A stretch of 64,000 nucleotides of DNA from Macrostomum lignano (GCA_002269645.1 NIVC01001096.1:248001-312000); one strand, 5' to 3'. Counted from the first letter of the stretch, positions 9,393 through 39,602 are shown. Numbers and translations: made by a program. The notes: generated from the letters alone by a model not told the origin.

Positions 9393-10649
9393 TCAGTCCT
9401 GCAATCGGTGATAGGTGTACACAGAGGCGAATGAGTCGTTGTCGGCTCCACAGGTCTGTGTGTAGCTTCCTCCACAACGGCGATTGCAATAGTGATCATC
9501 CATTTTTGTCCCTCGGTTAAGCAGTTTAGTGTCTCTACAGTAACAGTATTCTCCTTTACTTAAGCCGAATGCAGTTTTGTCCCTTACATATGCTGTGCAC
9601 AGATAAGCGCAGTGCTCGACCGTCATGTCCTTAGATTTTTGGCCCTCTGTTAGGAACTTGCCGTGCCCGTAAAAGCAGCCAACATATTTCGCTGTAAAAA
9701 AGAATTAATAGCAAAATAATTTGAGCACAAAGTCTCATTGACAACAGTTATGCATGGTTTAGTGAGACAGCGAAGCAGTGACACAGAGAGATGGTGGGGC
9801 AGTGAGATGCGAGACAAAAAGAAAGGAGGCACCCCACTGTTGCTATGGACAGAGTAGTCAATGAAAATTATGAAAAATCGTTAACTTACGTTTGGAGTAA
9901 AGAGATAGTGGTGAAGCTCTCTCTTCTTTCTCTGAAATTTGACGAGCGGTTCTTGCTGAAGTGACTGCATGCAGAGGGGCTGCAGAGGGGCTGCAGAGGG
10001 GCTGCAGAGGGGCTGCAGAGGGGCTGCAGAGGGGCTGCAGAGGGGCTGCAGAGGGGCTGCAGAGGGGCTGCAGAGGGGCTGCAGAGGGGCTGCAGAGGGG
10101 CTGCAGAGGGGCTGCAGAGGGGCTGCAGAGGGGCTGCAGAGGGGCTGCAGAGGGGCTGCAGAGGGGCTGCAGAGGGGCTGCAGAGTGGCTGCAGAGGGGC
10201 TGCAGAGGGGCTGCAGAGGGGCTGCAGAGGGGCTGCAGAGGGGCTGCAGAGGGGCTGCAGAGGGGCTGCAGAGGGGCTGCAGAGGGGCTGCAGAGGAGCT
10301 GCAGAGGGGCTGCAGAAGGGCTGCAGAGGGGCTGCAGAGGGGCTGCAGAGGGGCTGCAGAGGGGCTGCAGAGGGGCTGCAGAGGGACTGGAAAGACGGGG
10401 AGATGAGAGGTCGAATAAATGGGGCAATTAGGTTATAAGAACACAATGGGAATTTATCTTGGGTCAGGCGGCAGGCCGTGTGAGTTGGAGCAGGTGTGGG
10501 CAATGCGGGGAGTTAACATGGAGTAAGCAGACAGGCGGTGGATTCGAGTTGAATCGAATTGACTTACTTTTCTTGGCAGATGAGCAGCCCAGCCCGCAGA
10601 GCAGTGTTGCAGCAAGACAGCTCAGAAGCAGCAGACGTCTGACAGACAT
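9393..10649 (-). CDS. Secreted single-WSC-domain protein, copy A1 (exon 1 10649-10568, exon 2 9691-9393; 126 aa)
   Basis: Exon 1 [27 protein letters not shown] (signal-peptide-like) ends A|GTAAGT. Exon 2 after TTTTTACAG: TKYVGCF...MTVEHCAYLC...FGLSKGEYCYC...C...CGG..QTCG...SVY, 8 Cys in WSC spacing. Phases are compatible. Confidence 0.88.
9970..10385 (-). repeat. 11-bp minisatellite (CTGCAGCCCCT)n in intron 1 of WSC A1, ~38 copies
   Basis: Read directly from the sequence. Confidence 0.97.
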
Positions 10650-11098
10650 TTCCAATGCAGAAAAAGCAGCAGAATCCCTTTGTACTCAAAGCTTGAGATG
10701 TCGAATTCGACTTACAGTAAACTCTTCTGTTAAGTGGACCTTCGCTCCGAGGGTGAAAAAACGATTGCGAGCCTCTCAGCTGCTGAGCTGCAGCCACAGA
10801 CAGTTCTGTACAAAGCGATTCCTGTCTCACTGGCAGCGTCTGAGGGCCGCGATTGTCTATGGCTAACACCAGCTATATGGGCATGCGGAGCCGTGCACTT
10901 TTATTGGAGTGCAAGGGGAACCCGTTCTCAAATTTACCAGCTTTTTAATGAGCGTCGTCGTAGTGAGCGTGTTGTTAAACACTGCAGTCTAACAGTGGTT
11001 TAATGGTAGATTGTGTAGTATGATTTTCCTTTACTAAAGGCTCTTTAAAGGGTCTGTTTTCTAAGGCAAGACCAGAGGATTTTCACGCTCGTCTTAAA

Positions 11099-12434
11099 AT
11101 GGCTTTGATCAATTGGAAACATCTTCCCTGCGAATCGTTAGATGGAGTTAGCGACAGTGAACTGAGCTTTATTACTGCGCTAAGTTATACTGATCACCAT
11201 GGCGACACCGATCTGCAGAATATTATTGGCTTCCTCACGGATCTGCAGGCTAACTCGGAAGATGATGTTTCCGGAGTCAAATTGCCAGAATTACCTGAGT
11301 CTGTGGCTGCCGACATGGACCAAGGCGAGTTAGACTCGCTACCGCGCTCCACCCAAGAACAAATGATGCAACAGGGAAGTCGATTCATTGCCTTCATGCG
11401 CAAGCATACGACCAAAGAAGTACAAAGCATGACTAACGAGAAGCTAGGAGAGTATCTTCGTTTCTATTATTTTGGACTAAAGAAATCTGATGGAAGTCTG
11501 TATTCGCCTGCTACCCTTGTATGCATTCGAGCTAGTGTGCAGCGTTACCAAAGAAAGATACTCAAAGATGCAGACAGACATTATGAATGGGCCAGAGTTT
11601 GAAGCGGCGAACAGAATGCTTCGAGTGAAAGTTCGTCATTTCAGCGTTGAGGGTGCAGGAGTTGTTCAACAGTTTCAGCCTATTGAGGACGGAGACCTTC
11701 GAAAAATCAGGCAGCATTTTGACAGATCGACCGCAGAAGAACTTCAAGATGAGGTAGTTTTTGTCATTTTCTATACTCTAGGAGAGAGGCCAGGAGCATT
11801 TGGAGTCGATTCGAAAACGTGGGGCACGGATGGGCACAGCTACCTGAAGCTTCCGCCTTTGCCAACTAAAAACCAGTCTTCGGATCCGACCAAGTGCAAG
11901 GGCAACGTTGCAAAGCAGAGTCGCATCTATGGAGCTGAGAGAGATCTTATTCTTCACTACCAGTTATTGTTGCCAGAAGGAGACAATTTCTTTCCACGAC
12001 CACTCGCTAATGCTTCTAATGGAGTCTTGAGGTTTTCTAGTCGCCAAGTGCGTGGCGTCAACTGGTTGTGCTCATTCATGGGACATCTCAGTGAAGTGTG
12101 TTCGCTTTCGCAGCGATACACGAACCATTGCATTCGCGTCACGCGCATCTCGGACCTATTTGTCAGCGGTCACAGCATGGACGAGATAATGGCCGTTACC
12201 GGACAACGTAGTGAAGCTACGGATGTGAAAAGTCTGTCAGCTGCAAGTGACAGCACGCTGGATAGTTCGTTGACTACACCATTCAACAATTTAGCAGGTA
12301 CTTCGTTTATTACTTCACCAGCCGGTAGCACAGTGGCCGTTTCAGTAGCGCAACAACAATTGGATGTGAGTACAGCAGTGCGTAAGCCGATGTTTGCCAA
12401 CTGTAGCTTTTCTAATTGTACTTTTAATTTATAA
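11099..12434 (+). pseudogene. Crypton-type (DUF3504-like) tyrosine recombinase, degenerate
   Basis: Two overlapping ORFs (frameshift ~11560). Motifs LRFYYFGLKKSDGSLYSPATL..IRAS, DIMNGPEF..AN, PIE..DL.KI, LQDEVVF, GVNWL..FM..LS, YTNHCIRVT (H-x-x-R), IMAVTGQRS. The second His is replaced by Gln and no catalytic Tyr follows. Confidence 0.82.
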
Positions 12435-12929
12435 TAAGTTAGGCTTCGACATCAGATTAATAGACACTTCGTATTTGGACAGTGACAAAGTTTGCTTTTG
12501 AGACCCTTTTTTCTTTTGCATGATTTGTTTGTCAATGCTTAATCCCGATCCGAATCTTCTAATTTCTTAAAATCTTAATCTTCTAATAATGTTAGAAATC
12601 CCAATCTTCCAATGCTAGGAATCCAAATCTCCTACTACTAGGAATCCCACTCTCCAAATTCTAGTAGTCACAATCTCCCAATCACTTTAATCACACCCTC
12701 CTTTAATCAAATTTATTTCAAAATACAAAATTTACGCATAGTTTGCTTTATTATATCATTGTTTGTTGTACCTGTACGCATATTTCATATCTATTTATGC
12801 CATTCTCAATTGCCTAGTGTATCTATCGTCATTTTTGTTAAATAAACTGTTAACTGATTATTCAGCAAGTTTTGTCTATGGTTGAAATTCGCTTTGGAAG
12901 TCTGAAATAATGGCGTTTTTTGGACAATC

Positions 12930-15240
12930 ATTAAGACTCGGGTGGGCCATAGAACAATGGAGTCTTGGGGGTGTTGAGGACGTCCTTTGGGACATCGACG
13001 GCGGGCATGTAGATCGGAGCCGCCATGCGAGGGCGGTGATTGGCCAGCGCCGGCCATCCGGAGTCTGGAGGTCGAAGCTTACAAGATCCGCGGTGACAGG
13101 GCGCCTGGACTCTGCATGAAGGTAGAGGCTGCAATCGTAAGCTTCCTGGCGGCCTTGAGACCAAGCTTGCGAGCGAGAGTAGAGAGTAGGCGTGAGAGTC
13201 CTTTGGGTTGACGGCCATTGGGGCGGAGGGTCGCCATGATGGTCGGAACGAGGCCTCCGTTCGCTAAGGCAGAGACGAGAGAGTGGACTGTTCCATTGGA
13301 GTTTGCATTTCCAACGGCAGCGTTAAGGTGGGCGTTTGAACGAGGAATCGACGAACGTTGATTGGAACTCGCAAAGGTGGCTTCTGGAGATTAGTGTGGT
13401 GCAGCCCATCGCACTCGTGGCATCGTCGGGTGTCACGGCAGTCTCGAGTGTGGTGTCGGCGGAGGCAGTTGCGGCAGAGATTTTTCTTTCGGACAATCTT
13501 GAGGCGATCATGGGGCTTCCGCACCTCGCTGCAGGACATGGCGATGTGGTCGGAGCTGCTGGCGGTCGGTGGGCGCTTGTGCTGCGAGTGGATGGTGGCC
13601 GGGACGCAGCGTTGCTCGGAAGACTGGCGGAGGCAAATGCGCAGCTGGCACTGTGCTGAGGCGGCTCTGAGGGTCTTAAGCTTGCAGTCAAGATGGTCCT
13701 GGAGCTCTGCCATGATGGGCATGAGAGGCTACCTGTTAGAAGCGCGAAGATTGCGGATCTCGCTTTGTAATTCAAGCGGCAGGCGGCTCCAGAGCGCGTA
13801 GACGTCGCTGTCGAGGGTGCAGGCAAGCTCGCCGAGTCGAAGAAGCTGGCCAGTGGCCAGGCGGAGGGCATCCGTGAATTCCTCGAGCTCACCAAAGTTG
13901 GAAGCAGAACTGCAGTGAAGGGCGAGGAGACGCTGGAAGGAGGCGTTCTTTTGCTCCTACGTGTTGGAGTAGTTGGCCTGGAGGACACGGCAGGCCTCAG
14001 CGTAGTCGTTCGGCTGGTAGCCGTCGAAAGCACCGAGCTTCTTGAGAGCGGAGCCGGAGAGCAGACAGCGGAGTGCCTCGTATTTGTCGACGTCGTTAAG
14101 GCTGGAGCGGTCGACGCGGTATACGAAAGCGTCCCAGAAGCCCAGAATTGCAGCAGGGTCGGGCAATGCGTTCTTGAGAATGGTGGAGCGGATGAGCCCG
14201 GCCGGATCGTGAGCATCTGATGCGGGCGTTGAGGCAACTGGTGTCGAGGCAGGACGGATGGTGGTAGCGAGCTGTTGCATGGGCTGCTGGTTCTGCTGCA
14301 TCATCGCGGTCATGGAGGCGAGGAGGGCTGGTCACGCCGGGTGTAGCAGGAGAGGCGGCAGAGATCGGTGCAGCGGCCTGAGCAGCAGGAAGAGCCATTG
14401 CTCCGGCTGAAGGAGTGGTGACGGGCCACTGAGGTGGAAAGGCGATTGCTGGTTTCCCTCAATTGGCCACGCTGATTGCTGTTCCCACTGACGGCGTGGA
14501 AGGCTTCTGTGGCGGACTGTGCAGAGTCATCTTCAAGCAGACCTCCTCGAGGAAAAGTGCGGCTGCGAGGACCATCCTAGGGGATCAGACCCTGGCGATG
14601 CATCTGGTCACACAGGGAGCCGCGGCCTTCGATTGGTATCATAGCAGAGATGGCTGCGGAATTCGATGTTAGCACATCGAGTCTTCCTGGGCTCGCAGTA
14701 GGTGCTGAAAGAGGGCCTTGGAGACGGTGCCAGCAGGCATAAAGGCGGAGTCTAGACAGGGACGGCGGAGATGACGCAGCAGGCAGTGCATCGGAAGAGT
14801 TCGGAGCTGTGCATCTGGCGAGAGACATTTGCGCAGATAATATAGAGTCGTCGATGAAGATAGTTTTCGTAGTGGTAGTCACTCTCTGCTGTGAAGATCG
14901 TTGTGGTGAATCTTTTAAGACGGGCTGGTTGGCAGGTTCTTAACCACGCTCTACTCCCAAATTGGCCAAGTGCTGATAGGACGACAAGTAACGAAGAATG
15001 AGCTAACTCTTGGCAGAGGCTATATTTAGCAACAGGCGGGCAGTGAAAGACCAGGCTTAAATTTAAAGGTAACAAAACTGGACCTCTTCGTGTGGCACGC
15101 GCACGGAGAGGCCTAAAATATCGATCGTGAAACTATTATACTGTACGGACCGCTCTAAATACGCGCACAACAAGCACAAGGTAAAACGACCCAATTGGGG
15201 GCCACACCAAACGCAAAAATACACGGAGAAGAAAGGAAAT
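12930..15240 (-). mobile_element. BEL/Pao LTR retrotransposon fragment (gag + degenerate protease), decayed
   Basis: DUF1759-like FWDAFVYRVDRSSLNDVDKYEALRCLLSGSALK..DYAEACRVL..NY. BEL zinc knuckle NLCRNCLRRHHTRDC...RCHECDGLHHTNL. Stops and frameshifts; no RT. Outer boundary approximate. Confidence 0.82.
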
Positions 15241-15279
15241 AATACGAATTTTGTCAGTTTATAGGCGTAAATCTGACAT

Positions 15280-15490
15280 GTGGACACACCCTATAGACAC
15301 TCACCCTATGGACACTCACCCTACGGACACTCAAATTATGGACACTCTACGGACGCTCAAATTATGGACACTCACCCTACGGACACTCACCATATGGACA
15401 CTCATCCTATGGACACTCACTCCTCTTATGGACACTTAAATCCTGGACACTTACCTTCTGGACACTCACCTATTGACACTCACCTATAGT
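15280..15490. repeat. ~15-bp minisatellite (GGACACTCACCCTAT); mirror at 22040-22250
   Basis: Read directly from the sequence. Confidence 0.85.
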
Positions 15491-15919
15491 GTTCCATCCT
15501 ATGTATTCATTTAATAATATACTGTACAAGTATTTACCTACTCAGTTTATCAAATTGTCGGCAGAAAGAAAATCAAAAAAATGATAATAAAATATAAAAA
15601 CTCATAAAGGTTTCCAGCTATGAGCTATTCGCGTACTAAAGACTTGTTTATTTGACTTCCAAAAAGTTGAACTTTTTAGAAATTTTTAATAGCTACTACT
15701 GAAGAAACAGCTTTTTAAGAGCCTGGCTAAAATATGTACTTAGGAAAATAACTTGATCCAAAAATCCATATTTTTGGCGTTATAACTGCTATAACTCGCG
15801 ACCAGCTATAGCTTCAGTTAGCGAGAAGAGGCGTCGCCATGGATTTTATGGTAGAGGGACAAAGCCAAGAATTCAACATGTACATGCACATTATATTCAG
15901 CATCGGTGTTGTCACCGCT

Positions 15920-16395
15920 CACTTGGCGCCGCAGACTCATTTAGTGCCACAGATACTTATTTTGGCGCCACAGCCACTCATTTCAGCGCAGCAGGCACTC
16001 ATTTTGTTGTGCAGTCGCGCATTTTGGTGTCAATGGCACTTAGTTTAGCACCACAGACACTCATATTGGCGCTACGGACACTCATTTTGGCGCCACAGAC
16101 ATTCATTTTAGCGCCGAAGACTCTCGTTTTAATGCCAGAGACACTCATTTTGGTGCCGAGGGCACTTATTTTGGTGCCGCAGACACTCACTTTAGCGCCA
16201 GACACTCACTTTAGCGCCACAGACACTCAATTTAGCGCCACAGACACTCACTTTAGCGCCACAGACACTCACTTTAGCGCCACAGACACTCACTTTAGCG
16301 CCACAGACACTCACTTTAGCGCCACAGACACTCACTTTAGCGCCACAGACACTCATTTTCGCGCTTGCCGCGGACACTCATTTTGGTACCGCAGA
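15920..16395. repeat. 21-bp minisatellite (TTTAGCGCCACAGACACTCAC), degenerate to pure; mirror at 21133-21608
   Basis: Read directly from the sequence. Confidence 0.9.
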
Positions 16396-16967
16396 CACTC
16401 GTTCAATATTTTATAATCCATGATAAAGCATTTATTAAACAATAAGAAACCTCGTGCTTGCAAGACGTCACAGAATGCTCACTGCTTGCACAGTGATTGG
16501 CAGGTGCTCTTAGCTACTGTATATTTGAATTGTCAAACAGCACTTACAACTTAAATGTGATCAGTTTCCCTATCTTAAATCTGCAGATAAGACTAATTGC
16601 TAAATATAGTTACATACCTGTGATGAGAATTTGCAATCCTGCTACAGAAGAAGCACATTGATTTAATGCTTACAGAAGCCTAACTGTATAATACAGCTGT
16701 TTATGAAGAGCAAAGGAGATTAGACCAGGGTCTAAAAACAAAAAGGTATCCTGACAGAGTCGCATGTCCCTCAGCAGAAAAGCTACGAGCCCGGTGCTTA
16801 AACATGCAGTGATTCCTCATTGGCATTTTTATAGGCGCTTGCAGTTGTCCAATCACGGGAGCATGACCTGTTGTGAAAAAGATAAACAGTGAATGAGTGA
16901 GCTGACCTTGCAACACTTTCACTGCAGGTTCCACCTGACTTGATGCAGACTTTCTAAAGAGACACTC

Positions 16968-17290
16968 CGACACTGAGACACTGAGACACTGAGACACTGA
17001 GACACTGAGACACTGAGACACTGAGACACTCAGACACTGAGACAGTGAGACAGTGAGACACTGAGACACTGAGATACTGAGACACTGAGACACTGAGACA
17101 CTGAGACACTGAGACACTGAGACACTGAGACACTGAGACACTGAGACACTGAGACACTGAGACACTGAGACACTGAGACACTGAGACACTCAGACACTCA
17201 GACACTGAGACACTGAGACACTGAGACACTGAGACACTGAGACACTGAGACACTGAGACACTGAGACACTGAGACACTGAGACACTGAGA
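16968..17290 (-). repeat. (TGTCTCAG)n satellite of a truncated WSC cassette (3' part only, 16405-17290)
   Basis: Read directly. 16405-16968 mirrors 20560-21123. Confidence 0.95.
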
Positions 17291-17579
17291 CTTTTGAGTA
17301 AACCTCAAACCCCTTGCACTCCAATAAAAGTGCACGGCTCCGCATGCCCATATAGCTGGTGTTAGCCATAGACAATCGCGGCCCTCAGACGCTGCCAGTG
17401 AGACAGGAATCGCTTTGTACAGAACTGTCTGTGGCTGCAGCTCAGCAGCTGAGAGGCTCGCAATCGTTTTTGTCATCCTCGGAGCGAAGGTCCACTTAAC
17501 AGAAAAGTTTACTGTAAGTCGAATTCGACATCTCAAGCTTTAAGTACAAAGGGATTCTGCTGCTTTTTCTGCATTGGAA

Positions 17580-18945
17580 ATGTCTGTCAGACGTCTGCTG
17601 CTTCTGAGCTGTCTTGCTGCAACACTGCTCTGCGGGCTGGGCTGCTCATCTGCCAAGAAAAGTAAGTCAATTCGATTCAACTCGAATCCACCGCCTGTCT
17701 GCTTACTCCATGTTAACTCCCCGCATTGCCCACACCTGCTCCAACTCACACGGCCTGCCGCCTAACCCAAGATAAATTCCCATTGTGTTCTTATAACCTA
17801 ATTGCCCCATTTATTCGACCTCTCATCTCCCCGTCTTTCCAGCCCCTCTGCAGCCCCTCTGCAGCCCCTCTGCAGCCCCTCTGCAGCCCCTCTGCAGCCC
17901 CTCTGCAGCCCCTCTGTAGCCCCTCTGCAGCCACTCTGCAGCCCCTCTGCAGCCCCTCTGCAGCCACTCTGCAGCCCCTCTGCAGCCCCTCTGCAGCCCC
18001 TCTCCAGCCTCTCTGCAGCCCCTCTGCAGCCCCTCTGCAGCCCCTCTGCAGCCCCTCTGCAGCCTCTCTGCAGCCCCTCTGCAGCCCCTCTGCAGCCCCT
18101 CTGCAGCCCCTCTGCAGCCCCTCTGCAGCCCCTCTGCAGCCCCTCTGCAGCCACTCTGCAGCCCCTCTGCAGCCCCTCTGCAGCCCCTCTGCAGCCCTCT
18201 GCAGCCCCTCTGCAGCCCCTCTGCAGCCCCTCTGCAGCCCCTCTGCAGCCCCTCTGCAGCCCCTCTGCAGCCCCTCTGCAGCCCCTCTGCAGCCCCTCTG
18301 CAGCCCCTCTGCAGCCCCTCTGCAGCCCCTCTGCAGCCCCTCTGCAGCCCCTCTGCAGCCCCTCTGCATGCAGTCACTTCAGCAAGAACCGCTCGTCAAA
18401 TTTCAGAGAAAGAAGAGAGAGCTTCACCACTATCTCTTTACTCCAAACGTAAGTGAACGATTTTTCATAATTTTCATTGACTACTCTGTCCATAGCAACA
18501 GTGGGGTGCCTCCTTTCTTTTTGTCTCGCATCTCACTGCCCCACCATCTCTCTGTGTCACTGCTTCGCTGTCTCACTAAACCATGCATAACTGTTGTCAA
18601 TGAGACTTTGTGCTCAAATTATTTTGCTATTAATTTTTTTTTACAGCGAAATATGTTGGCTGCTTTTACGGGCACGGCAAGTTCCTAAGAGAGGGCCAAA
18701 AGTCTAAGGACATGACGGTCGAGCACTGCGCTTATCTGTGCACAGCATATGTAAGGGACAAAACTGCATTCGGCTTAAGTAAAGGAGAATACTGTTACTG
18801 TAGAGACACTAAACTGCTTAACCGAGGGACAAAAATGGATGATCACTATTGCAATCGCCGTTGTGGAGGAAGCTACACACAGACCTGTGGAGCCGACAAC
18901 GACTCATTCGCCTCTGTGTACACCTATCACCGATTGCAGGACTGA
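17580..18945 (+). CDS. Secreted single-WSC-domain protein, copy A3 (exon 1 17580-17661, exon 2 18647-18945)
   Basis: Same exon structure and GT-AG sites as A1/A4. Lies in the spacer of the palindrome. Confidence 0.88.
17840..18368 (+). repeat. 11-bp minisatellite (CTGCAGCCCCT)n in intron 1 of WSC A3, ~48 copies
   Basis: Read directly from the sequence. Confidence 0.97.
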
Positions 18946-19009
18946 GTTTCCGCAAGCCAAGTGAGTGGCCTTTTTATACTTGTAGACCCATTAGTCTCGG
19001 TCTCAGCAC

Positions 19010-20565
19010 TGTGTCTCAGTGTCTCAGTGTCTCAGTGTCTCAGTGTCTCAGAGTCTCAGTGTCTCAGTGTCTCTGTGTCTCATTGTCTCATTGTCTCAGT
19101 GTCTCAGTGTCTCAGTGTCTCAGTGTCTCAGTGTCTCAGTGTCTCAGTGTCTCAGTGTCGGAGTGTCTCAGTGTCTCAGTGTCTCATCGTCTCATTGTCT
19201 CATTGTCTCACAGTCTCAGTGTCTCAGTGTCTCATTGTCTCATTGTCTCATTGTCTCATTGTCTCACAGTCTCAGTGTCTCAGAGTCTCAGTGTCTCAGT
19301 GTCTCTGTGTCTCATTGTCTCATTGTCTCATTGTCTCATTGTCTCACAGTCTCAGTGTCTCAGTGTCTCACAGTCTCAGTGTCTCGGTGTCTCAGTGTCT
19401 GAGTGTCTGAGTGTCTCAGTGTCTCAGTGTCTCAGTGTCTCAGTGTCTCAGTGTCTCACAGTCTCAGTGTCTCAGTGTCTGAGTGTCTCAGTGTCTCAGT
19501 GTCTCAGTGTCTCAGTGTCTCAGTGTCTCAGTGTCTCAGTGTCGGAGTGTCTCAGTGTCTCAGTGTCTCAGTGTCTCAGTGTCTCAGTGTCTCAGTGTCT
19601 GAGTGTCTTAGTGTCTCAGTGTCTCAGTGTCTCAGTGTCTCAGTGTCTCAGTGTCTCAGTGTCTCAGTGTCTCACTGTCTCAGTGTCTCAGTGTCTGAGT
19701 GTCTCACTGTCTCACTGTCTCAGTGTCTGAGTGTCTCACTGTCTCAGTGTCTCAGTGTCTCAGTGTCTCAGTGTCTCAGTGTCTCAGTGTCTCAGTGTCT
19801 CAGTGTCGGAGTGTCTCAGTGTCTCAGTGTCTCATCGTCTCATTGTCTCATTGTCTCACAGTCTCAGTGTCTCAGTGTCTCACAGTCTCAGTGTCTCAGT
19901 GTCTGAGTGTCTCAGTGTCTCAGAGTCTCAGTGTCTCAGTGTCTCTGTGTCTCATTGTCTCATTGTCTCATTGTCTCATTGTCTCACAGTCTCAGTGTCT
20001 CAGTGTCTCACAGTCTCAGTGTCTCAGTGTCTGAGTGTCTCAGTGTCTCAGTGTCTCAGTGTCTCAGTGTCTCAGTGTCTCAGTGTCTCAGTGTCGGAGT
20101 GTCTCAGTGTCTCAGTGTCTCAGTGTCTCAGTGTCTCAGTGTCTCAGTGTCTCAGTGTCTCAGTGTCTCAGTGTCTCAGTGTCTCAGAGTCTCAGTGTCT
20201 CAGTGTCTCTGTGTCTCATTGTCTCATTGTCTCATTGTCTCATTGTCTCACAGTCTCAGTGTCTCAGTGTCTCACAGTCTCAGTGTCTCATTGTCTCACA
20301 GTCTCAGTGTCTCAGTGTCTCATTGTCTCATTGTCTCATTGTCTCATTGTCTCACAGTCTCAGTGTCTCAGTGTCTCAGTGTCTCAGTGTCTCAGTGTCT
20401 CAGTGTCTCAGTGTCTCAGTGTCTCAGTGTCTCAGTGTCTCAGTGTCTCAGTATCTCAGTGTCTCAGTGTCTCACTGTCTCACTGTCTCAGTGTCTGAGT
20501 GTCTCAGTGTCTCAGTGTCTCAGTGTCTCAGTGTCTCAGTGTCTCAGTGTCTCAGTGTCGGAGTG
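19010..20565 (+). repeat. (TGTCTCAG)n satellite in the post-stop intron of WSC A3
   Basis: Read directly from the sequence. Confidence 0.97.
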
Positions 20566-26429: not shown

Positions 26430-26878
26430 TTTAAGACGAGCGTGAAAATCCTCTGGTCTTGCCTTAGAAAACAGACCCTTTAAAGAGCCTTTAGTAAAGG
26501 AAAATCATACTACACAATCTACCATTAAACCACTGTTAGACTGCAGTGTTTAACAACACGCTCACTACGACGACGCTCATTAAAAAGCTGGTAAATTTGA
26601 GAACGGGTTCCCCTTGCACTCCAATAAAAGTGCACGGCTCCGCATGCCCATATAGCTGGTGTTAGCCATAGACAATCGCGGCCCTCAGACGCTGCCAGTG
26701 AGACAGGAATCGCTTTGTACAGAACTGTCTGTGGCTGCAGCTCAGCAGCTGAGAGGCTCGCAATCGTTTTTTCACCCTCGGAGCGAAGGTCCACTTAACA
26801 GAAGAGTTTACTGTAAGTCGAATTCGACATCTCAAGCTTTGAGTACAAAGGGATTCTGCTGCTTTTTCTGCATTGGAA

Positions 26879-28099: not shown

Positions 28100-29000
28100 C
28101 TGTGTCTAAGTGTCTCAGTGTCTCAGTGTCTCAGTGTCTCAGAGTCTCAGTGTCTCAGTGTCTCTGTGTCTCTGTGTCTCATTGTCTCATTGTCTCATTG
28201 TCTCATTGTCTCACAGTCTCAGTGTCTCAGTGTCTGAGTGTCTCAGTGTCTCAGAGTCTCAGTGTCTCAGTGTCTCTGTGTCTCATTGTCTCATTGTCTC
28301 ATTGTCTCAGTGTCTCAGAGTCTCAGTGTCTCAGTGTCTCACAGTCTCAGTGTCTCAGTGTCTCAGTGTCTGAGTGTCTCACTGTCTCAGTGTCTCAGTG
28401 TCTCAGTGTCTCAGTGTCTCAGTGTCTCACTGTCTCACTGTCTCAGTGTCTGAGTGTCTCAGTGTCTCAGTGTCTCAGTGTCTCAGTGTCTCAGTGTCTC
28501 AGTGTCTCAGTGTCTCAGTGTCTCAGTGTCTCAGTGTCTCAGTGTCTCAGTGTCTCACTGTCTCACTGTCTCAGTGTCTGAGTGTCTCAGTGTCTCAGTG
28601 TCTCAGTGTCTCAGTGTCTCAGTGTCTCAGTGTCTCAGTGTCTCAGTGTCTCAGTGTCTCAGTGTCTGAGTGTCTCACTGTCTCAGTGTCTCAGTGTCTC
28701 AGTATCTCAGTGTCTCAGTGTCTCACTGTCTCACTGTCTCAGTGTCTGAGTGTCTCAGTGTCTCAGTGTCTCAGTGTCTCAGTGTCTCATTGTCTCAGTG
28801 TCTCAGTGTCTCAGTGTCTCAGTGTCTCAGTGTCTCATTGTCTCAGTGTCTCAGTGTCTCACTGTCTCAGTGTCTGAGTGTCTCACTGTCTCAGTGTCTC
28901 AGTGTCTCAGTGTCTCAGTGTCTCAGTGTCTCAGTGTCTCATTGTCTCAGTGTCTCAGTGTCTCAGTGTCTCAGTGTCTCAGTGTCTCAGTGTCGGAGTG
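28100..29000 (+). repeat. (TGTCTCAG)n satellite in the post-stop intron of WSC A4
   Basis: Read directly from the sequence. Confidence 0.97.
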
Positions 29001-30504
29001 TCTCTTTAGAAAGTCTGCATCAAGTCAGGTGGAACCTGCAGTGAAAGTGTTGCAAGGTCAGCTCACTCATTCACTGTTTATCTTTTTCACAACAGGTCAT
29101 GCTCCCGTGATTGGACAACTGCAAGCGCCTATAAAAATGCCAATGAGGAATTACTGCATGTTTAAGCACCGGGCTCGTAGCTTTTCTGCTGAGGGACATG
29201 CGACTCTGTCAGGATACCTTTTTGTTTTTAGACCCTGGTCTAATCTCCTTTGCTCTTCATAAACAGCTGTATTATACAGTTAGGCTTCTGTAAGCATTAA
29301 ATCAATGTGCTTCTTCTGTACCAGCGAATGTTTTTTTAGAATTGCAAATTCTCATCACAGGTATGTAACTATATTTAGCAATTAGTCTTATCTGCAGATT
29401 TAAGATAGGGAAACTGATCACATTTAAGTTGTAAGTGCTGTTTGACAATTCAAATATACAGTAGCTAAAGGCACCTGCCAATCACTGGGCAAGCAGTGAG
29501 CATTGTGTGACGTCTTGCAAGCGTGAGGTTTCTCATTGTTTAATAAATGCTTTATCGTGGATTAAGAAACACTGCATTAAAACACCGAAATAGACTGACA
29601 GGGAGGCTGTGGAGACACTGAGACGTCTGATGATGCATCGGCTTGTTAGTGAGAAATTTGTAGCACTGGCCGACTATGATACATGTACTCGTATTTCGTG
29701 ATATCTCATTTACTCTGGGTCTGCTCATATGGTTGTGTTAACCTGAGCAAGATTTTCACTGGTCTGACTGACTGATGACAGATCTATAGACACCCACGAG
29801 CTGGCCATTTGCAGCACTCCTGCAGCAGCCGTTGCGCGGGATAAAAAACTTGAATCATTTTATAGCCAGTGTCCTCGAGGTTCCTGCCCACTACCCCACT
29901 CTAACTCCCCCGCCGCTTCGGATCTGTCCTCTGACATGAGCCTGGCTTCAAATGAAATCGTCTTCTCCACCACTCATGACTCATAATGCACGATTTTACA
30001 CGTTTAAATCCTGTTACATTTTTATTTGATTCTGCGTGCAGGATTGCTGATCTTGCAGGCTTAAGCGTGCAGAATTGGTTTTGTCTATGGCTTTGAAACT
30101 GAGGCAAATGTGCGAGTGAAGGCGTGCACACTTGAAAGTTTGGCTGCCTCTATATTTATTAGTTTGCAAAGAGTTGGTAGGCGCAGAACAGGCGCGCACG
30201 AGGTGAGGGTGAATGCAAGCTCGTAAAAATCGACAACAACAACAATCAAATGCGATATTGTTTAAGTAACCAATCGATACAACTGCTTATGCATAGTAAT
30301 GGAATCAGCATGGGTTTTAAAACCAAAAAGTCGGTCTCCTGACAGAGGCACAGGGGCCACTCAGCAGAAATCTGATTATTGAATATTTATTAGAGTTTCA
30401 TAAATATATTCATCCGCGATTGTGGCTCTCAAATCACTGGAGCAGAACCTGTTGCGAAATGAGGAGCAGTGAGTGCTGGACTGATACTTTAACACGTTTA
30501 TTGC

Positions 30505-31790
30505 AGACACTGAGACACTGAGACACTGAGACTGCGAGATACTGAGACACTGAGACACTGAGACAATGAGACACTGAGACACTGAGACACTGAGACACTG
30601 AGACACTGAGACACTGAGACTGCGAGATACTGAGACACTGAGACTGTGAGACAATGAGACACTGAGACACTGAGACACTGAGACACTGAGACACTGAGAC
30701 ACTGAGACAATGAGACACTGAGACACTGAGACACTGAGACACTGAGACACTGAGACACTGAGACACTGAGACACTGAGACACTGAGACACTGAGACACTG
30801 AGACTGCGAGATACTGAGACACTGAGACTGTGAGACAATGAGACACTGAGACACTGAGACACTGAGACACTGAGACACTGAGACACTGAGACACTGAGAC
30901 ACTGAGACACTGAGACACTGAGACACAGAGACACTGAGACACTGAGACAGTGAGACTGCGAGATACTGAGACACTGAGACTGTGAGACAATGAGACACTG
31001 AGACACTGAGACACTGAGACACTGAGACACTGAGTCACTGAGACACTGAGTCACTGAGACACTGAGACACTGAGACACTGAGACACTGAGACACTGAGAC
31101 ACTGAGACACTGAGACACTGAGACTGCGAGATACTGAGACACTGAGACTGTGAGACAATAAGACACTGAGACACTGAGACACTGAGACACTGAGACACTG
31201 AGTCACTGAGACACTGAGACACTGAGACACTGAGACACTGAGACACTGAGACACTGAGACACTGAGACACTGAGACACTGAGACACTGAGACACTGAGAC
31301 ACTGAGACACTGAGACACTGAGACACTGAGACACTGAGACACTGAGACACTGAGACTGCGAGATACTGAGACACTGAGACTGTGAGACAATGAGACACTG
31401 AGACACTGAGACACTGAGACACTGAGACACTGAGACACTGAGACACTGAGACACTGAGACACTGAGTCACTGAGACACAGAGTCACTGAGACACTGAGAC
31501 ACTGAGACACTGAGACACTGAGACAGTGAGACTGCGAGATACTGAGACACTGAGACTGTGAGACAATGAGACACTGAGACACTGAGACACTGAGACACTG
31601 AGACACTGAGTCACTGAGACACTGAGACACTGAGACACTGAGACACTGAGACACTGAGACACTGAGACACTGAGACACTGAGACACTGAGACACTGAGAC
31701 ACTGAGACACTGAGACACTGAGACACTGAGACACTGAGTCACTGAGACACAGAGTCACTGAGACACTGAGACACTGAGACACTGAGATAC
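30505..31790 (-). repeat. (TGTCTCAG)n satellite in the post-stop intron of WSC paralogue B
   Basis: Read directly. Carries its own variant units (TATCTCGCAG, TGACTCAG). Confidence 0.97.
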
Positions 31791-31810
31791 CAAACGACTG
31801 ACTTACCTTC

Positions 31811-32546
31811 TCAGCTCTGCAGTTTGTACACACTGAGTGCACTGAAACCTCCACATCTGTTCTTTGTGTACCCCTTATCACAATAGGAGTTGCATAGAGA
31901 ATCATCTGGCAGTGAATGGAAATCCAGCAGTTGGTCCAGTTCGGCACAGTAGCAGTAGACTTCTTGAAAGATACCCATCATACTGGCACCAGTGTAATTT
32001 TTCCCCAGGCACTCATAAACGCACTGCGTTCTAATCTTGATTTTATAGCTTTGAGCTTTGAGATAGTTAGTAGTGCGTTCGTTAAAATAGCAGCCAAGAT
32101 ACGTCCCTGTAAAAATTCAATAGGTAATGAAAAATGAAAAAGGAATGCACAAAACCGTGCAGGAATGCATTTCTGCGCCTAATGCTTTTTCAGTGAGATT
32201 TTACCATAGACACCCATTTCTGCACGCAAAAGAGTGCAAGAATGCCATTCCTGCATGGAAAATCAGCCGACAATGGAAATGACTGCACAGGGGCTGCAGA
32301 AACGAGGAGATGAGAGGTAGGAGATTCTAATAAATGGGGAGTAATTAGGGATATGAACACTATCGGAATTTTTCCGTGTGAGTTGGAGCAGGTGTGGGCA
32401 ATGCGGGCAGTTGACTGGAGTGAGCAGACGGGCGGTGGATTTGAGTTCAGTCAATCCGTCTTACATTTCACAGAAGATGAATCGCCCAGCCCGCAGAGCA
32501 ATGTTGCAGCAAGACAGCTCAGTAGCAGCAGACGTCTGACAGACAT
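31811..32546 (-). CDS. Diverged secreted single-WSC-domain paralogue B (exon 1 32546-32465, exon 2 32106-31811; ~125 aa); not in ORF track
   Basis: Exon 1 [28 protein letters not shown]|GTAAGA. Exon 2 after TTTTTACAG: [98 protein letters not shown], 8 Cys, no stops. Confidence 0.85.
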
Positions 32547-33248
32547 TTCCAATGCAGAAAAAGCAGCAGAAGCCCTTTGTACTCACAGCTTGAGATGTCG
32601 AATTCGACTGACAGTAAACTCTTCTGCTAAGTCGGTCTTCGCCCCGAGGGTGACAAAAACGATTGCGAGCTGCAGCCACAGACAGTTCTGTACAAAGCGA
32701 TTCCTGTCTCACTGGCAGCGTCTGAGGGCCGCGATTGTCTATGGCTAACACCAGCTATATGGGCATGCGGAGCCGTGCACTTTTATTGGAGTGCAAGGGG
32801 AACCCGTTCTCAAATTTACCAGCTTTTTAATGAGCGTCGTAGTGAGCGTGTTGTTAAACACGCTATACCATTGTCGTTTACCACAGCGTGCAAGAAATAC
32901 TTCTAGCATGCAGGAATGCAGCATGCATGCTAGCGCGCACTCGTGCAGATGTTATTCCCGCACTCATGACCGTGCTGGAATCATTCATTATTTCAGCATT
33001 AGCAGGCGTTTGAACCATAGTCGATTAGTTAACTATGCATGTATCCCCCTTTTGCCCCGGGCGAGTGTCTATGTGACGCATGTTTTCATTTATTTCCCTA
33101 GGTGAATAAATCATTTATTTCCCGCTGCCCCGCGGGCTGATAAATTTGTCTGTGGCCTAAATGTGGGGCTTCGCCCCCACACCCCCAGCGAGCAATCTGC
33201 CCCTCATCCCTGCTAGCAGCCAACATACCGAACGGGGGATACATATCA

Positions 33249-35190: not shown

Positions 35191-35623
35191 TTTAAAACTT
35201 CAGTATTTTAACCTTCCAAACCCACACTTTTGGTTTCGTTTCTTATACTGTAGCTTATTTTCTAGAAAAACGTGCAGGAATGACTTTGTCTATGGTCAAA
35301 GGACAATGCAGTCTAATATTGGTTTTTGCATGCTAAGTGAGACATTTTTCAAGCAATCTGAGACTGCATAGCAAAAACACTATTGTCTATGGCCACCCCT
35401 CGCTGCAGCCCAACTTTTTGGGATCGCCTTGCAAGCAAAGTGAGAAATTTTTTAAAGCTAAGTGAGAACCATATTGAAAACAAAGGCTGGGCTATGGCAA
35501 ATCAACTGCGTCTAACAAGCAACCACCCCTTTTAATTTCGTAAAACCACCCCTTTGTTTTTAGAAAGTTTGTTTTTAGAACAATATTTTCAGAATGGTGC
35601 TGTCAGCGATTATTATTTTGGCG

Positions 35624-37228
35624 CCGCAGGCACCATTTTAGCGCCGCAGGCACTCATTTTAGCGCCGAAGGCACTCATTTTAGCGCCGAAGGCACTCATT
35701 TTAGCGCCGCAGGCACTCATTTTAGCGCCGCAGGCACTCATTTTAGCGCCGCAGGCACTCATTTTAGCGCCGCAGGCACTCATTTTAGCGCCGCAGGCAC
35801 TCATTTTAGCGCCGAAGGCACTCATTTTAGCGCTGCAGGCACTCATTTTAGCGCCGCAGGCACTCATTTTAGCGCCGAAGGCACTCATTTTAGCGCCGAA
35901 GGCACTCATTTTAGCGCCGCAGGCACTCATTTTAGCGCCGAAGGCACTCATTTTAGCGCCGCAGGCACTCATTTTAGCGCCGAAGGCACTCATTTTAGCG
36001 CTGCAGGCACTCATTTTAGCGCCGCAGGCACTCATTTTAGCGCCGAAGGCACTCATTTTAGCGCTGCAGGCACTCATTTTAGCGCTGCAGGCACTCATTT
36101 TAGCGCCGCAGGCACTCATTTTAGCGCCGCAGGCACTCATTTTAGCGCCGAAGGCACTCATTTTAGCGCTGCAGGCACTCATTTTAGCGCTGCAGGCACT
36201 CATTTTAGCGCCGCAGGCACTCATTTTAGCGCCGAAGGCACTCATTTTAGCGCCGAAGGCACTCATTTTAGCGCCGCAGGCACTCATTTTAGCGCCGAAG
36301 GCACTCATTTTAGCGCCGCAGGCACTAATTTTAGCGCCGAAGGCACTCATTTTAGCGCCGAAGGCACTCATTTTAGCGCCGCAGGCACTCATTTTAGCGC
36401 CGCAGGCACTCATTTTAGCGCCGAAGGCACTCATTTTAGCGCCGCAGGCACTCATTTTAGCGCCGAAGGCACTCATTTTAGCGCCGAAGGCACTCATTTT
36501 AGCGCCGAAGGCACTCATTTTAGCGCCGCAGGCACTCATTTTAGCGCCGCAGGCACTCATTTTAGCGCCGCAGGCACTCATTTTAGCGCCGCAGGCACTC
36601 ATTTTAGCGCCGAAGGCACTCATTTTAGCGCCGAAGGCACTCATTTTAGCGCCGCAGGCACTCATTTTAGCGCTGCAGGCACTCATTTTAGCGCCGCAGG
36701 CACTCATTTTAGCGCCGAAGGCACTCATTTTAGCGCCGCAGGCACTCATTTTAGCGCCGAAGGCACTCATTTTAGCGCCGCAGGCACTAATTTTAGCGCC
36801 GAAGGCACTCATTTTAGCGCCGAAGGCACTCATTTTAGCGCCGCAGGCACTAATTTTAGCGCCGAAGGCACTCATTTTAGCGCCGAAGGCACTCATTTTA
36901 GCGCCGCAGGCACTCATTTTAGCGCCGAAGGCACTCATTTTAGCGCCGAAGGCACTCATTTTAGCGCCGAAGGCACTCATTTTAGCGCCGCAGGCACTCA
37001 TTTTAGCGCCGCAGGCACTCATTTTAGCGCCGAAGGCACTCATTTTAGCGCCGCAGGCACTCATTTTAGCGCCGAAGGCACTCATTTTAGCGCCGCAGGC
37101 ACTCATTTTAGCGCCGAAGGCACTCATTTTAGCGCCGAAGGCACTCATTTTAGCGCCGAAGGCACTCATTTTAGCGCCGCAGGCACTCATTTTAGCGCCG
37201 AAGGCACTCATTTTAGCGCCGAAGGCAC
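35624..37228. repeat. 21-bp minisatellite (TTTTAGCGCCGCAGGCACTCA), ~76 copies
   Basis: Read directly; 7-aa periodic pseudo-ORFs. Confidence 0.98.
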
Positions 37229-37824
37229 TCTATTGATTTCACAGCCCATGTCGGCGAGACCGCCAACAGTATCCGCGGCCGCATGCCTGTGGTGCTCGCC
37301 TACACCAAGGGGAGAAGCCTCCGAACTCTGTTTTGCCATAGTCGGCTCGGTCCTGCCAACTAATTCCTTTTTTGACGCCTGTACAGAGACCATTTTGCTT
37401 CTATTTTTTGCACTCTGCGCTTTCATTAGTTATATATATTGATGTTTTATGCGCTTGTGCACACCGCTCAATCGATTTTCCCTCACTGGCGTTATCGATC
37501 GCGTTAAAATATTGACGGCAATTCGCACCAAATACATTTTACTCGCATTCTGCCCTGACGAGGAGCAACTCACTTGAAATATCGGCAAATCTAACTAAAC
37601 TGACTTTGTCAGTCCTTATATTTTATCGTGTCAGCGCCTGAGATTGGAGGCGCTCTCCTCTCTCCCACTCTCTCGATCTCCCTCTCTCTCTCTTCCCCTC
37701 TCACGCTAGAGTGCCAAAGCGAACTTTTTAAGAGCGAGACAGAGACTGGGAGTATCGTCAGCCGGGATTCGACATCTCAAGCTTTCGAGTACAAAGGGAT
37801 TCTGCTGCTTTTTCTGCATTGGAA

Positions 37825-39602
37825 ATGTCTGTCAGACGTCTGCTGCTTCTGAGCTGTCTTGCTGCAACACTGCTCTGCGGACTAGGCTGCTTATCTTCCA
37901 AGAAAGGTAAGAAGGATCGATTAAACTCAGATCCACTGCCCGTCTGCTCACTCCAGTCAACTGCCTGTCCTCATTGCCCCTTGACCCAGGATAAATTCCC
38001 ATTGTGTTCATATCCCTAATTGCTCCTTATTTTTTCGAATCTCCCTGTATCTCCAGGCCCTCTTCAGACTCTTCTGCCTCTTCAGCAAGACTCCACACCT
38101 TAAATTTCAGAGAAAGCTACAGCTGAGAGCTACTCCCGTAAGCTAAAGTATGTTTTCAATTTTTTTACGATTCATTGCTTTTCCAGGAACAGTGCAGTGG
38201 AGTAGTGTCTCCCACTCTTTGCCTCACTGTCTCACTGTCTGTCTCACTGTCTGTCTCACTGTCTGTCTCACTGTCTGTCTCACTATCTGTCTCACTGTCT
38301 GTCTCACTGTCTGTCTCACTGTCTGTCTCACTGTCTGTCTCACTGTCTGTCTCACTCTCTGTCTCTCTGTCTGTCTCTCTGTCTGTCTCACTGTCTGTCT
38401 CACTGTCTGTCTCACTATCTGTCTCACTGTCTGTCTCTCTGTCTGTCTGTCTCACTGTCTGTCTCACTGTCTCTCTGTCTCACTGTCTGTCTCTCTGTCT
38501 GTCTCTCTGTCTCACTGTCTGTCTCACTGTCTGTCTCACTGTCTGTTTCACTGACTGTCTCACTGTCTGTCTCACTGTCTGTCTCACTGTCTGTCTCTCT
38601 GTCTGTCTGTCTCACTGTCTGTCTCACTGTCTCTCTGTCTCACTGTCTGTCTCTCTGTCTGTCTCTCTGTCTCACTGTCTGTCTCACTGTCTCTCTGTCT
38701 CACTGTCTGTCTCTCTGTCTGTCTGTCTGTCTCTCTGTCCGTCTCACCGTCTGTCTCTCTGTCTCACCGTCTGTCTCTCTGTCTGTCTGTCTCACTGTCT
38801 GTCTCTCTGTCTGTCTCACTGTCTGTCTCTCTGTCTCACTGTCTCTCTATCTCACTGTCTGTCTCTCCTTCTGTCTCTCTGTCTCTCTGTCTCACTGTCT
38901 GTCTCTCTGTCTCACTGTCTGTCTCACTGTCTGTCTCTCTGTCTGTCTGTCTGTCTCTCTGTCCGTCTCACTGTCTGTCTCTCTGTCTCACCGTCTGTCT
39001 CTCTGTCTGTCTGTCTCACTGTCTGTCTCTCTGTCTGTCTCACTGTCTGTCTCTCTGTCTCACTGTCTCTCTATCTCACTGTCTGTCTCTCTGTCTGTCT
39101 CTCTGTCTGTCTCACTGTCTCTCTATCTCACTGTCTGTCTCTCTGTCTGTCTCTCTGTCTGTCTCTCTGTCTCACTGTCTCACTGTCTGTCTCACTGTTT
39201 CTCTGTCTCAATGTCTGTCTCACTGTCTGTCTCTCTGTCTGTCTCTCTGTCTCATTGTCTCTCTGTCTGTCTGACTGTCTCGCTGTGCTCAATTTTTTCT
39301 TGCTATTCTTTTTTACAGCAAAGTATCTTGGCTGTTATGTTAGTAAAGCAGAGGTTTTAAAAAATGCGAGTTATAAAACCAAGGACATGACGATCGAGAA
39401 CTGCGCTCAGCTGTGCACGGTGAAGAGACCGGGAAAAACATTAATGGGCTTGACTGAAGGAAAATACTGTCTCTGCGACAACGCAAAGTCCTCGTTTGGT
39501 TTATTTGCCATCAATCAGTGGTGCGACTTTGCTTGTGGCGGCGACCGCACACAGCACTGTGGGGGTAAAGAAGCCACCTCTGTGTACCAATTGCAGAACT
39601 GA
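37825..39602 (+). CDS. Diverged secreted single-WSC-domain paralogue C (exon 1 37825-37906, exon 2 39319-39602; 121 aa)
   Basis: Exon 1 [28 protein letters not shown]|GTAAGA. Exon 2 AKYLGCY...DMTIENCAQLC...GLTEGKYCLC...WCDFACGGDRTQHCGGKEATSVYQLQN*, 8 Cys. Confidence 0.88.
38210..39290. repeat. TGTC/TCAC/TCTC low-complexity array in intron 1 of WSC paralogue C
   Basis: Read directly from the sequence. Confidence 0.95.

Follow-up and report, generated by a model that had tools for sequence, protein, structure and literature searches.

Introduction

In beta-defensin and conotoxin families, the signal peptide occupies a highly conserved exon or region of its own, and the mature peptide, built on a cysteine framework, is driven apart by positive selection once the gene has been duplicated in tandem. 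We analysed a 64-kb stretch of DNA (hereafter, the window) in which genes for small secreted WSC proteins of the Macrostomum lineage form a tandem cluster. Of the 76 M. lignano transcripts limited to the prostate, more are annotated with WSC-type matches than with anything else (PMC5977470 Table S1; PMC4490696). The only close database relative of the family is the M. lignano hypothetical protein PAA77628.1 (BOX15_Mlig013254g1; UniRef A0A267FUY6), which is encoded on scaffold NIVC01000732.1 (L001 in coordinates below) and comes from an RNA-seq-guided annotation (PMC5730564).

Organization of the cluster

Five intact WSC genes (A1, A2, A3, B and C) were recovered in the window at the positions proposed by a first-pass annotation. 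In all five, an 82-nt exon-1 coding segment encodes a signal peptide and ends at a phase-1 junction, the donors read GTAAG, the acceptors combine a polypyrimidine tract with CAG (GT..AG splicing), and the spliced frame is open for 121-126 aa, a design more regular than expected by chance. The 82-nt signal exon, phase-1 splicing and lone 8-Cys WSC exon previously described thus hold for every copy; the distinct paralogues, however, are only three (A, B and C), because the WSC exons of A2 and A3 are identical and that of A1 differs from them by 2 nt (1 aa, R->T), making A1-A3 near-identical copies.

Gene A1 occupies positions 9393-10649 on the minus strand (exon-1 CDS 10568-10649; candidate 42-nt micro-exon 9890-9931; WSC exon 9393-9691, including the stop). 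On the plus strand, A2 spans 17580-18945 (exon-1 CDS 17580-17661; candidate micro-exon 18407-18448; WSC exon 18647-18945, Pfam WSC 4.3e-11) and A3 spans 26879-28036 (exon-1 CDS 26879-26960; candidate micro-exon 27498-27539; WSC exon 27738-28036). Their introns hold a minisatellite with a period of 11 nt, located at 9970-10389 in A1 (11-bp unit), 17840-18368 in A2 and 27139-27459 in A3. Gene B lies at 31811-32546 on the minus strand (exon-1 CDS 32465-32546; 358-nt intron; WSC exon 31811-32106) and gene C at 37825-39602 on the plus strand (exon-1 CDS 37825-37906; 27-nt micro-exon 38111-38137; WSC exon 39319-39602), with a 12-bp repeat array in its second intron (38227-39280). In A and C, in-frame micro-exons with good splice sites (42 and 27 nt, respectively) lie inside what had been described as a single intron, a description that probably does not stand for these genes; the deposited PAA77628.1 model uses the C-type micro-exon. 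No usable micro-exon was found in the 358-nt intron of B.

Gene A was amplified to three near-identical copies by recent tandem and inverted duplication. Read in reverse complement, the arm 10069-17291 matches 20237-27459 at 99.68% over 7.2 kb. In the spacer between the two arms (17292-20236) lies the 5' half of A2, and the M. lignano scaffold has the inner junction (17291/17310) as well (L001 1906/1913). The region as a whole is rich in satellites and transposon remnants.

An 8-bp satellite (GTGTCTCA) lies downstream of every gene: directly 3' of the C stop (39677-45826, plus strand) and 3' of A1 (8533-9327), A2 (19011-20569), A3 (28102-29004) and B (30505-31787), with a truncated array at 16959-17291. 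A donor-like GT stands 4-16 nt past each stop codon, and each array is followed by a conserved acceptor (ttcacaacag/GT). As these motifs suggest, the satellite probably sits in a 3'UTR intron, which would make the conserved sequence beyond it a terminal UTR exon. Splice and poly(A) motifs place the putative terminal exon of C at 45900-46120 (plus strand; ATTAAA at about +197) and its putative starts in the other copies at 8441 (minus, A1), 20661 (A2), 29096 (A3) and 30448 (minus, B); an orphan copy in mirrored orientation begins at 16867 (minus). Identity over this putative exon is 77% for A-C, 64% for A-B and 59% for B-C. For the 3' flank, earlier estimated by eye to be about 80-85% identical, 90 of 99 positions agree over the stretch then compared, and identity over the whole post-satellite flank is 80%. 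The gene would run from a 5'UTR and the 82-nt signal exon through the 42- or 27-nt micro-exon (A and C only) to the WSC exon with the stop, a satellite-filled 3'UTR intron and a short terminal UTR exon.

A near-constant leader and a diverged WSC domain

The predicted protein opens with a signal peptide, which a short variable linker joins to a single 8-Cys WSC domain of the carbohydrate-binding type. The leader begins MSVRR and ends G-L-G, its invariance stopping exactly at G21. With a 9-residue Kyte-Doolittle mean of 2.0-2.7 across residues 5-20, it has the basic n-region, hydrophobic core and small residues at -3 and -1 of a signal peptide by heuristic criteria. Within the first 63 coding nt, A differs from B at 2 positions and from C at 2, exactly as first counted, and all the differences are synonymous and at the level of the flanks. 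Identity among A, B and C is 94-97% across -65..+63 and 71-87% over the first 215 nt of the intron, and A and B have in common an extra ~215 nt upstream (93%) that C lacks. This 5' module lies at 37760-38077 in C (plus strand; exon 1 flanked by ~65 nt of putative 5'UTR and ~200 nt of intron), 10430-10982 in A1 (minus), 17310-17800 in A2, 26546-27160 in A3 and 32283-32861 in B (minus). Real excess change is confined to the 19 nt directly after the signal peptide (exon-1 nt 64-82, past the predicted cleavage site), where 8 of 19 positions differ between A and B versus 17 of 216 in the flanks (p = 2e-4); tests of the local excess gave p = 2e-4 and 1e-3.

The WSC exons of the paralogues are 50-59% identical in nucleotides, and the mature domains 42% (A-C), 34% (A-B) and 37% (B-C) identical in amino acids, with the 8 Cys aligned throughout. 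The hand-aligned value of about 40% for A-C was therefore close; that for A-B was rightly low, with all Cys kept, but at 25-30% fell short of the 34% found. A leader at 94-97% nucleotide identity over a mature part at 50-59% (34-42% in amino acids), with its Cys framework retained, is the pattern of a conserved-leader family. The eight Cys columns are invariant, in canonical order, in A, B, C and three M. lignano copies. Pfam WSC (PF01822) matched A at 43.3 bits (4e-11) and C at 56.6 bits (3e-15) over model positions 1-82, above the gathering cut-off of 27.8; B scored below it (24.5 bits, E = 3.2e-5) but can be aligned with A and C from end to end of the domain, all 8 Cys included. The A/B/C profile also matched the entire cysteine-rich domain of yeast Wsc1 (7pz2; E = 1e-9) and Kremen1 (5fww, 7bzt; E = 9e-7 to 1.6e-6). 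An AlphaFold2 model from a 4-sequence alignment had a mean pLDDT of 40, too low for it to bear on a WSC/PAN-like fold. Gene models, Pfam matches and leader comparison thus agree with the first-pass view of a locally amplified family of small proteins in which a signal peptide precedes a lone WSC domain. We infer that the proteins may serve in extracellular glycan binding as a gland secretion, for which immunity, adhesion, reproduction and predation, all suggested at first, would each be a possible setting.

Comparison with the M. lignano scaffold

The CDS of PAA77628.1 comprises exactly exon 1, the micro-exon and the WSC exon of the syntenic scaffold. It shares with C the leader and the three-coding-exon plan, and its WSC exon is 97.5% identical in nucleotides and 95% in amino acids; the C counterpart in M. 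lignano is a transcribed, spliced gene. Both the scaffold and the window contain a collinear A-B-satellite-C-LITAF block. Unlike the window, however, the scaffold has a single A copy with its ATG destroyed and a B copy without exon 1, and only C is annotated. Divergence between the two is 6-12%, exceeding the 1.4-2.4% by which the M. lignano subgenomes are reported to differ (PMC10733133), so the window and the scaffold probably represent sister species or diverged paralogous blocks.

Origin of the contrast between gene ends and WSC exons

The reading that we favour, with a probability of about 0.5, is that A, B and C are old paralogues whose ends have been held alike by recombination or conversion plus constraint, with excess change after the signal peptide. 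The WSC exons and adjoining intron would be old, with synonymous sites near saturation, and the 5' module (5'UTR, signal peptide and first ~200 nt of intron) and the 3'UTR would have been homogenised by exchange between neighbouring copies, through gene conversion or unequal crossing-over, for which the shared satellites may have been the seeds. The likeness of the leader would also owe something to ordinary purifying selection on the signal peptide, and the first residues of the mature protein would have changed faster than their surroundings on top of the exchange. Conversion alone cannot explain the 19-nt hot spot after the signal peptide.

Among the paralogues, dS in the WSC exon ranges from 0.7 to above 1, a near-saturated value that depends on the method, and omega is about 0.5-0.7 (NG86, LWL85 and ML), with one unstable YN00 estimate of 1.75. 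The dN/dS above 1 that marks the mature region of conotoxins and beta-defensins was not found among them. At conserved residues, 15 of 37 four-fold sites differ versus 22.6% in the 5' intron (p = 0.026). Nor is the intron next to the mature exon conserved as on the leader side: over its last 50 nt identity is 51-71%, indistinguishable from that of the exon (p = 0.11-0.76), and past ~60 nt it is unalignable. Furthermore, the closest pair changes along the gene, from A-B in the 5' block to A-C in the WSC exon and 3' end. The proposed exchange is read from three paralogues and one outside scaffold; the alignable non-coding blocks are a biased and possibly constrained sample, so ends that seem younger could be constrained ends.

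As a tentative alternative, a fairly recent duplication, dated by the likeness of leader, intron and UTR, could have been followed by strong diversifying selection on the mature WSC domain, on the model of conotoxins, beta-defensins or seminal-fluid proteins. This would account for a leader at 94-97% identity beside a mature domain at 34-42% with every Cys retained, and for a stretch at exon-1 nt 64-82 much more diverged than both flanks. If the duplication had a single age, positive selection would also predict that dN (0.5-0.7) exceeds the divergence of the 5' intron (about 0.15-0.35), as it does. The prostate transcripts that evolve fast in M. lignano also include WSC proteins at high frequency (PMC5977470 Table S1; PMC4490696), and A differs from its M. 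lignano counterpart by 23 replacements, 4 silent changes and a 3-codon indel. The 23:4 ratio (omega 1.6) is, however, not significant (p = 0.28), and of the 10 changes that can be polarised at least 7 occurred in the M. lignano copy, whose start codon and one conserved Tyr are gone; omega against that scaffold is 0.19 for B and 0.63 for C. Nearly all paralogue estimates of omega are also below 1 with dS saturating, where residues are conserved the silent four-fold sites have diverged about twice as far as the 5' intron, and the intron beside the WSC exon has diverged as much as the exon. The first-pass annotation had set accelerated, positively selected exon evolution against an exon-2 dN/dS well below 1 with saturated Ks; it is approximately the latter that the paralogues display, and the cause it had proposed is not supported. 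Current hypermutation of the WSC exon is likewise absent: 6 of 121 four-fold sites differ between the window and L001, and this recent synonymous change (about 5%) equals the divergence of the flanks (about 6-7%).

We consider it unlikely that old paralogues kept their 5'UTR, signal exon, early intron and 3'UTR alike without exchange, by strong purifying selection on shared regulatory, targeting or splicing elements. The best-conserved stretches are indeed exonic (5'UTR, signal peptide, terminal UTR exon) or splice-proximal, and where the intron is unconstrained A, B and C each have different repeats in its place. Yet identity of 71-97% extends to the silent sites of exon 1 and to ~200 nt of the intron, the further ~215 nt upstream is common to A and B and missing from C, the closest pair in the 5' block is not that of the rest of the gene, and the divergence of the 5' and 3' blocks between the window and L001 is not clearly below that of neighbouring DNA. 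Slightly more doubtful still is a cassette system, in which a fixed secretion module (promoter, 5'UTR and signal exon) and a fixed 3'UTR would be recombined time and again, via the satellites bracketing the WSC exon, with divergent WSC lectin cassettes. Such a system, if true, would yield secreted glycan binders in a repertoire of fast turnover, perhaps in seminal fluid under sexual conflict; copy number does vary between close relatives, with three intact A genes here versus one broken A in the M. lignano scaffold. That the copies are simply decaying in a region dense in satellites and transposon remnants, as the ATG-less A, the B without exon 1 and the sole annotation of C in M. lignano might suggest, is highly improbable given that the five window copies retain frames, splice sites, signal peptide and 8 Cys, that B has an omega of 0.19 against its counterpart and that the C-type gene is transcribed in M. 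lignano.

Comparison with known systems

The domains of yeast Wsc1 and Kremen1, which align with A, B and C over their whole length and 8-Cys pattern, are parts of membrane receptors, whereas the window genes encode proteins of ~100 residues in which a signal peptide is followed by the single domain. The best profile matches in 1.84 billion representatives were multi-WSC secreted proteins of bivalves, fungi and protists from the same domain family, such as a 'putative fungistatic metabolite' and fungal WSC lectins; unlike the window genes, the multi-WSC proteins carry 3-23 repeats in 300-2300 aa. No other small single-domain relative appeared among the best 150 profile matches. Closer to home, the prostate-limited candidates Mlig-pro46, Mlig-pro5/RNA815_80.4, Mlig-pro4 and Mlig-pro11 resemble the window genes in being secreted, WSC-built and from the same genus, but the prostate-limited WSC transcripts are longer and often have 2 or more WSC domains. 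Mlig013254 is absent from the 18 prostate candidates with published Mlig_3_7 ids, none of whose primers matches the window, and its id was not found in the paper supplements searched; protein searches gave no sequence-level match between the prostate WSC candidates and the family. A role in the prostate or seminal fluid is plausible for the window genes only by analogy with these WSC-bearing transcripts.

Like beta-defensins and conotoxins, the window family has been amplified in tandem and joins a conserved leader to a variable mature part on a Cys scaffold. Of the conotoxin-like interpretation first proposed, the almost invariant leader, the diverged mature part and the 19-nt excess are upheld, but not positive selection as the driver: the family departs from those systems in that an omega above 1 was not found for the mature region and the adjoining intron has diverged too. 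Its variable part is, moreover, a lectin-type fold of ~90 residues, where beta-defensins and conotoxins have a short peptide.

Gene models and protein features

The window is rich in repeats and eukaryotic in character. A Cys-pattern scan in six frames identified five WSC-like exons in it, and a search with the leader sequence found five matching first exons. Joined at canonical GT..AG sites, these exons give five open frames of 121-126 aa, each with an 82-nt exon-1 coding sequence and a phase-1 junction to an exon encoding an eight-Cys WSC domain, as the first-pass annotation had described. The A genes, whose WSC exons differ from one another at 0-2 nt, are A1 (exon-1 CDS 10568-10649 and WSC exon 9393-9691, minus strand), A2 (17580-17661 and 18647-18945, plus) and A3 (26879-26960 and 27738-28036, plus); the others are B (32465-32546 and 31811-32106, minus) and C (37825-37906 and 39319-39602, plus). 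In the A, B and C proteins a predicted signal peptide is followed by just one WSC domain. The leader combines a basic n-region with a hydrophobic core of 15 residues and a G-x-G ahead of the point where invariance ends. Pfam WSC matched across the whole model, with A and C above the curated cut-off and B, in which all eight Cys align, just below it. The A/B/C domain profile also matches the solved structures of the yeast Wsc1 cysteine-rich domain (7pz2, 1e-9) and Kremen1. Right behind the predicted cleavage site, A and C have a ninth Cys followed by KK or KKKK (residues 22-27; window 17643-17661 and 37888-37906), and B has Asp in place of this Cys. Possible roles of this A/C segment are dimerisation through the unpaired Cys or processing at a dibasic site.

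The exons of the original gene plan stand, but its single intron probably does not hold for A and C. PAA77628.1 is the annotated C-type protein of the M. lignano scaffold NIVC01000732.1 (hereafter L001), from an RNA-seq-guided annotation (PMC5730564), and its coding sequence corresponds exactly to exon 1, a 27-nt micro-exon and the WSC exon of L001. C in the window has a micro-exon of the same type (38111-38137), and A has a candidate in-frame micro-exon of 42 nt with tttcag/AG and /gtaagt sites (A1, 9890-9931; A2, 18407-18448; A3, 27498-27539). In B, we found no micro-exon that keeps the frame. Past every stop codon lies a donor-like GT at 4-16 nt, followed by an 8-bp satellite 0.8-6.1 kb long and, beyond each array, a conserved polypyrimidine tract with ttcacaacag/GT. 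Downstream of this post-satellite acceptor come ATTAAA at ~200 nt in A and C and AATAAA at 57 nt in B. The arrangement suggests that the satellite lies inside a putative 3'UTR intron, with a terminal UTR exon beyond the array. The conserved 3' flank of the first-pass annotation would then be this putative exon; its similarity, at first judged by eye, was borne out by 90/99 identical positions over the segments originally compared and by 80% identity over the whole post-satellite flank. The satellite itself (GTGTCTCA) is stop-free in three frames, and the resulting ORFs of up to 2117 aa ('SVSVSQCL...'; 39496-45914, also 8528-9489, 19011-20827, 28102-29262 and 30376-31947) are spurious and not genes.

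Relatives and genomic context

Queried with the spliced A protein or an A/B/C/PAA77628.1 alignment, the protein databases returned PAA77628.1 ('hypothetical protein BOX15_Mlig013254g1') as the sole relative. Exact look-up of the A, B and C proteins gave no entry, and the best 150 HMMER matches against 1.84 billion representatives included no close small relatives, being mostly multi-repeat WSC proteins of oysters, fungi and Diplonema. The window and L001 share one order of elements (A, B, 21-bp satellite, C, LITAF-like gene), at ~88-94% identity. With 6-12% divergence from L001, the window exceeds the 1.4-2.4% published for SNPs between the subgenomes of M. lignano (PMC10733133). It is therefore unlikely to be simply the homeologue of L001 in M. 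lignano; a sister species, or else a paralogous block that has diverged, is the more likely source. L001 has only one A copy, in which 9 nt stand in place of the 21 nt holding the ATG and n-region (L001 2190-2215), and its B copy has lost both exon 1 and the greater part of the intron (L001 6543-6812), so the number of intact genes differs between the genomes. Both the A-type and the B-type WSC exons of L001 remain open.

An inverted duplication carries the A copies: read on the opposite strand, 20237-27459 repeats 10069-17291 (7.2 kb, 99.68% identical, with a spacer of 2.9 kb). An assembly artefact is unlikely, since the arms are 0.3% apart and the inner junction of this palindrome (17291/17310) recurs in the independent assembly of L001, itself 6-7% diverged. 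Either the arms homogenise each other, or a recent second duplication gave rise to the outer copy. Within the arms are transposon-like ORFs at 11099-12434 (+), equivalent to 25094-26429 (-), and at 13264-14313 (-), equivalent to 23215-24264 (+). One is 314 aa long and without a Pfam match; the other is Gag-like, has a knuckle of the CCHC type and matches DUF1759 only weakly (4e-4, under cut-off). A 21-bp satellite family (ATTTTAGCGCCGCAGGCACTC and variants) occupies 35615-37230 between B and C, 47413-48130 past C, and 15935-16364 and 21164-21593 within the two arms, and is found in the syntenic place in L001. Beyond C lie two single-exon LITAF-like zinc-ribbon genes on the plus strand (48983-49321 and 50977-51381; PF10601, 2e-23 and 4e-24), the second of which corresponds in position to the LITAF-like gene annotated in L001 (17562-17948). 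A long ORF at 59392-60927 (-) consists mainly of a repeat typified by a 12-residue string and has a Cys-rich C-terminal stretch (CPAGKYY...CYPCPTG), with only a weak NCD3G match (1e-3, under cut-off). Scans against Rfam and for tRNAs found nothing in the window.

Divergence among the paralogues

Identity among A, B and C is 94-95% in the putative 5'UTR (-65..-1) and 94-97% over exon 1 nt 1-63, where all differences are synonymous and A-B and A-C alike show the two originally counted. It is 58-84% over exon 1 nt 64-82, 71-87% in the first 215 nt of the intron, 51-71% in the last 50 nt of intron ahead of the WSC exon (unalignable further upstream) and 50-59% in the WSC exon. In the putative terminal UTR exon, A-C are 77%, A-B 64% and B-C 59% identical. 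For the mature domains the early hand estimates hold: ~40% was given for A-C, now measured at 42%, and roughly 25-30% for A-B, now at 34%; B-C stand at 37%. In both the window and L001, the 5' block (putative 5'UTR, exon 1 and first ~200 nt of intron) was found nowhere but ahead of WSC exons, which speaks against a dispersed repeat independent of the genes.

The first-pass annotation attributed this pattern to a conserved leader and a rapidly diversifying, conotoxin-like WSC domain. Recent duplication followed by diversifying selection as the main cause of the divergence finds its support in the 19 coding nt past the predicted cleavage site, which in comparisons with B diverge much more strongly than either flank (p = 2e-4 and 1e-3), a local excess that fits such selection. 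Against it, the high divergence extends beyond coding sites to the adjoining intron, the WSC exon being no more diverged than the preceding 50 nt (p = 0.11-0.76). Paralogue WSC-exon dS is 0.7-1.5 (NG86, LWL85), unstable or larger by ML, with dN of 0.5-0.74 and omega of ~0.5-0.7. At residues conserved between paralogues, 15/37 four-fold sites differ, compared to 22.6% in the 5' intron (p = 0.026). As read from the sequence, the silent sites of the WSC exon predate the 5' module, and this too counts against recent duplication. Finally, the modules conflict on which paralogues are nearest: A and B are the closest pair in the 5' block and have in common another ~215 nt upstream at 93%, and A and C are closest in the WSC exon and 3' end. 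Taken together, divergence beyond coding sites, older silent sites and conflicting modules favour old WSC exons whose gene ends would have been held alike through exchange among tandem copies, with constraint on the leader probably adding to the likeness, over recent duplication with conotoxin-like acceleration; both processes can coexist. Given saturation and the few copies, diversifying selection as the main cause keeps a real, if clearly minor, chance. The original observation is thus confirmed with a corrected gene plan and its interpretation only partly upheld.

Comparisons of the window with L001 cover a shorter divergence. Four-fold sites differ at 6/121 positions, about the divergence of the flanks, which argues that the exon is not hypermutated. 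B has an omega of 0.19 and C one of 0.63; A reaches 1.6, with a 23:4 ratio of replacements to silent changes that is not significant (p = 0.28). Polarisable changes in A number seven on the M. lignano copy and three on the window copy; the former copy, which is without a start codon, has lost a conserved Tyr among its changes.

Function and significance

The host of the cluster is a model flatworm amenable to RNAi, in situ hybridisation and transgenesis. The domain content suggests that each gene encodes a putative secreted glycan-binding protein. WSC domain is the commonest annotation among prostate-limited seminal-fluid candidates of M. lignano (PMC5977470 Table S1; PMC4490696; PMC6953679). 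None of the 18 prostate-limited transcripts with published Mlig_3_7 ids matches Mlig013254, an id also not found in the full texts and supplements searched on these transcripts; none of 36 published dsRNA primers matches within the window, and protein searches gave no sequence-level tie between the window WSC family and the prostate-limited candidates. If expression in a gland, reproductive or other, proves true, the locus would be a compact and tractable case of the birth and death of lectin-like secreted genes, with leader, linker and WSC domain as clear modules of separable histories. It also carries a caution, because a conserved leader beside a divergent mature domain is on its own no evidence of positive selection. 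The present yield is corrected gene models and a lineage-specific, previously unannotated WSC subfamily, within a class of secreted WSC-domain proteins that is already known.
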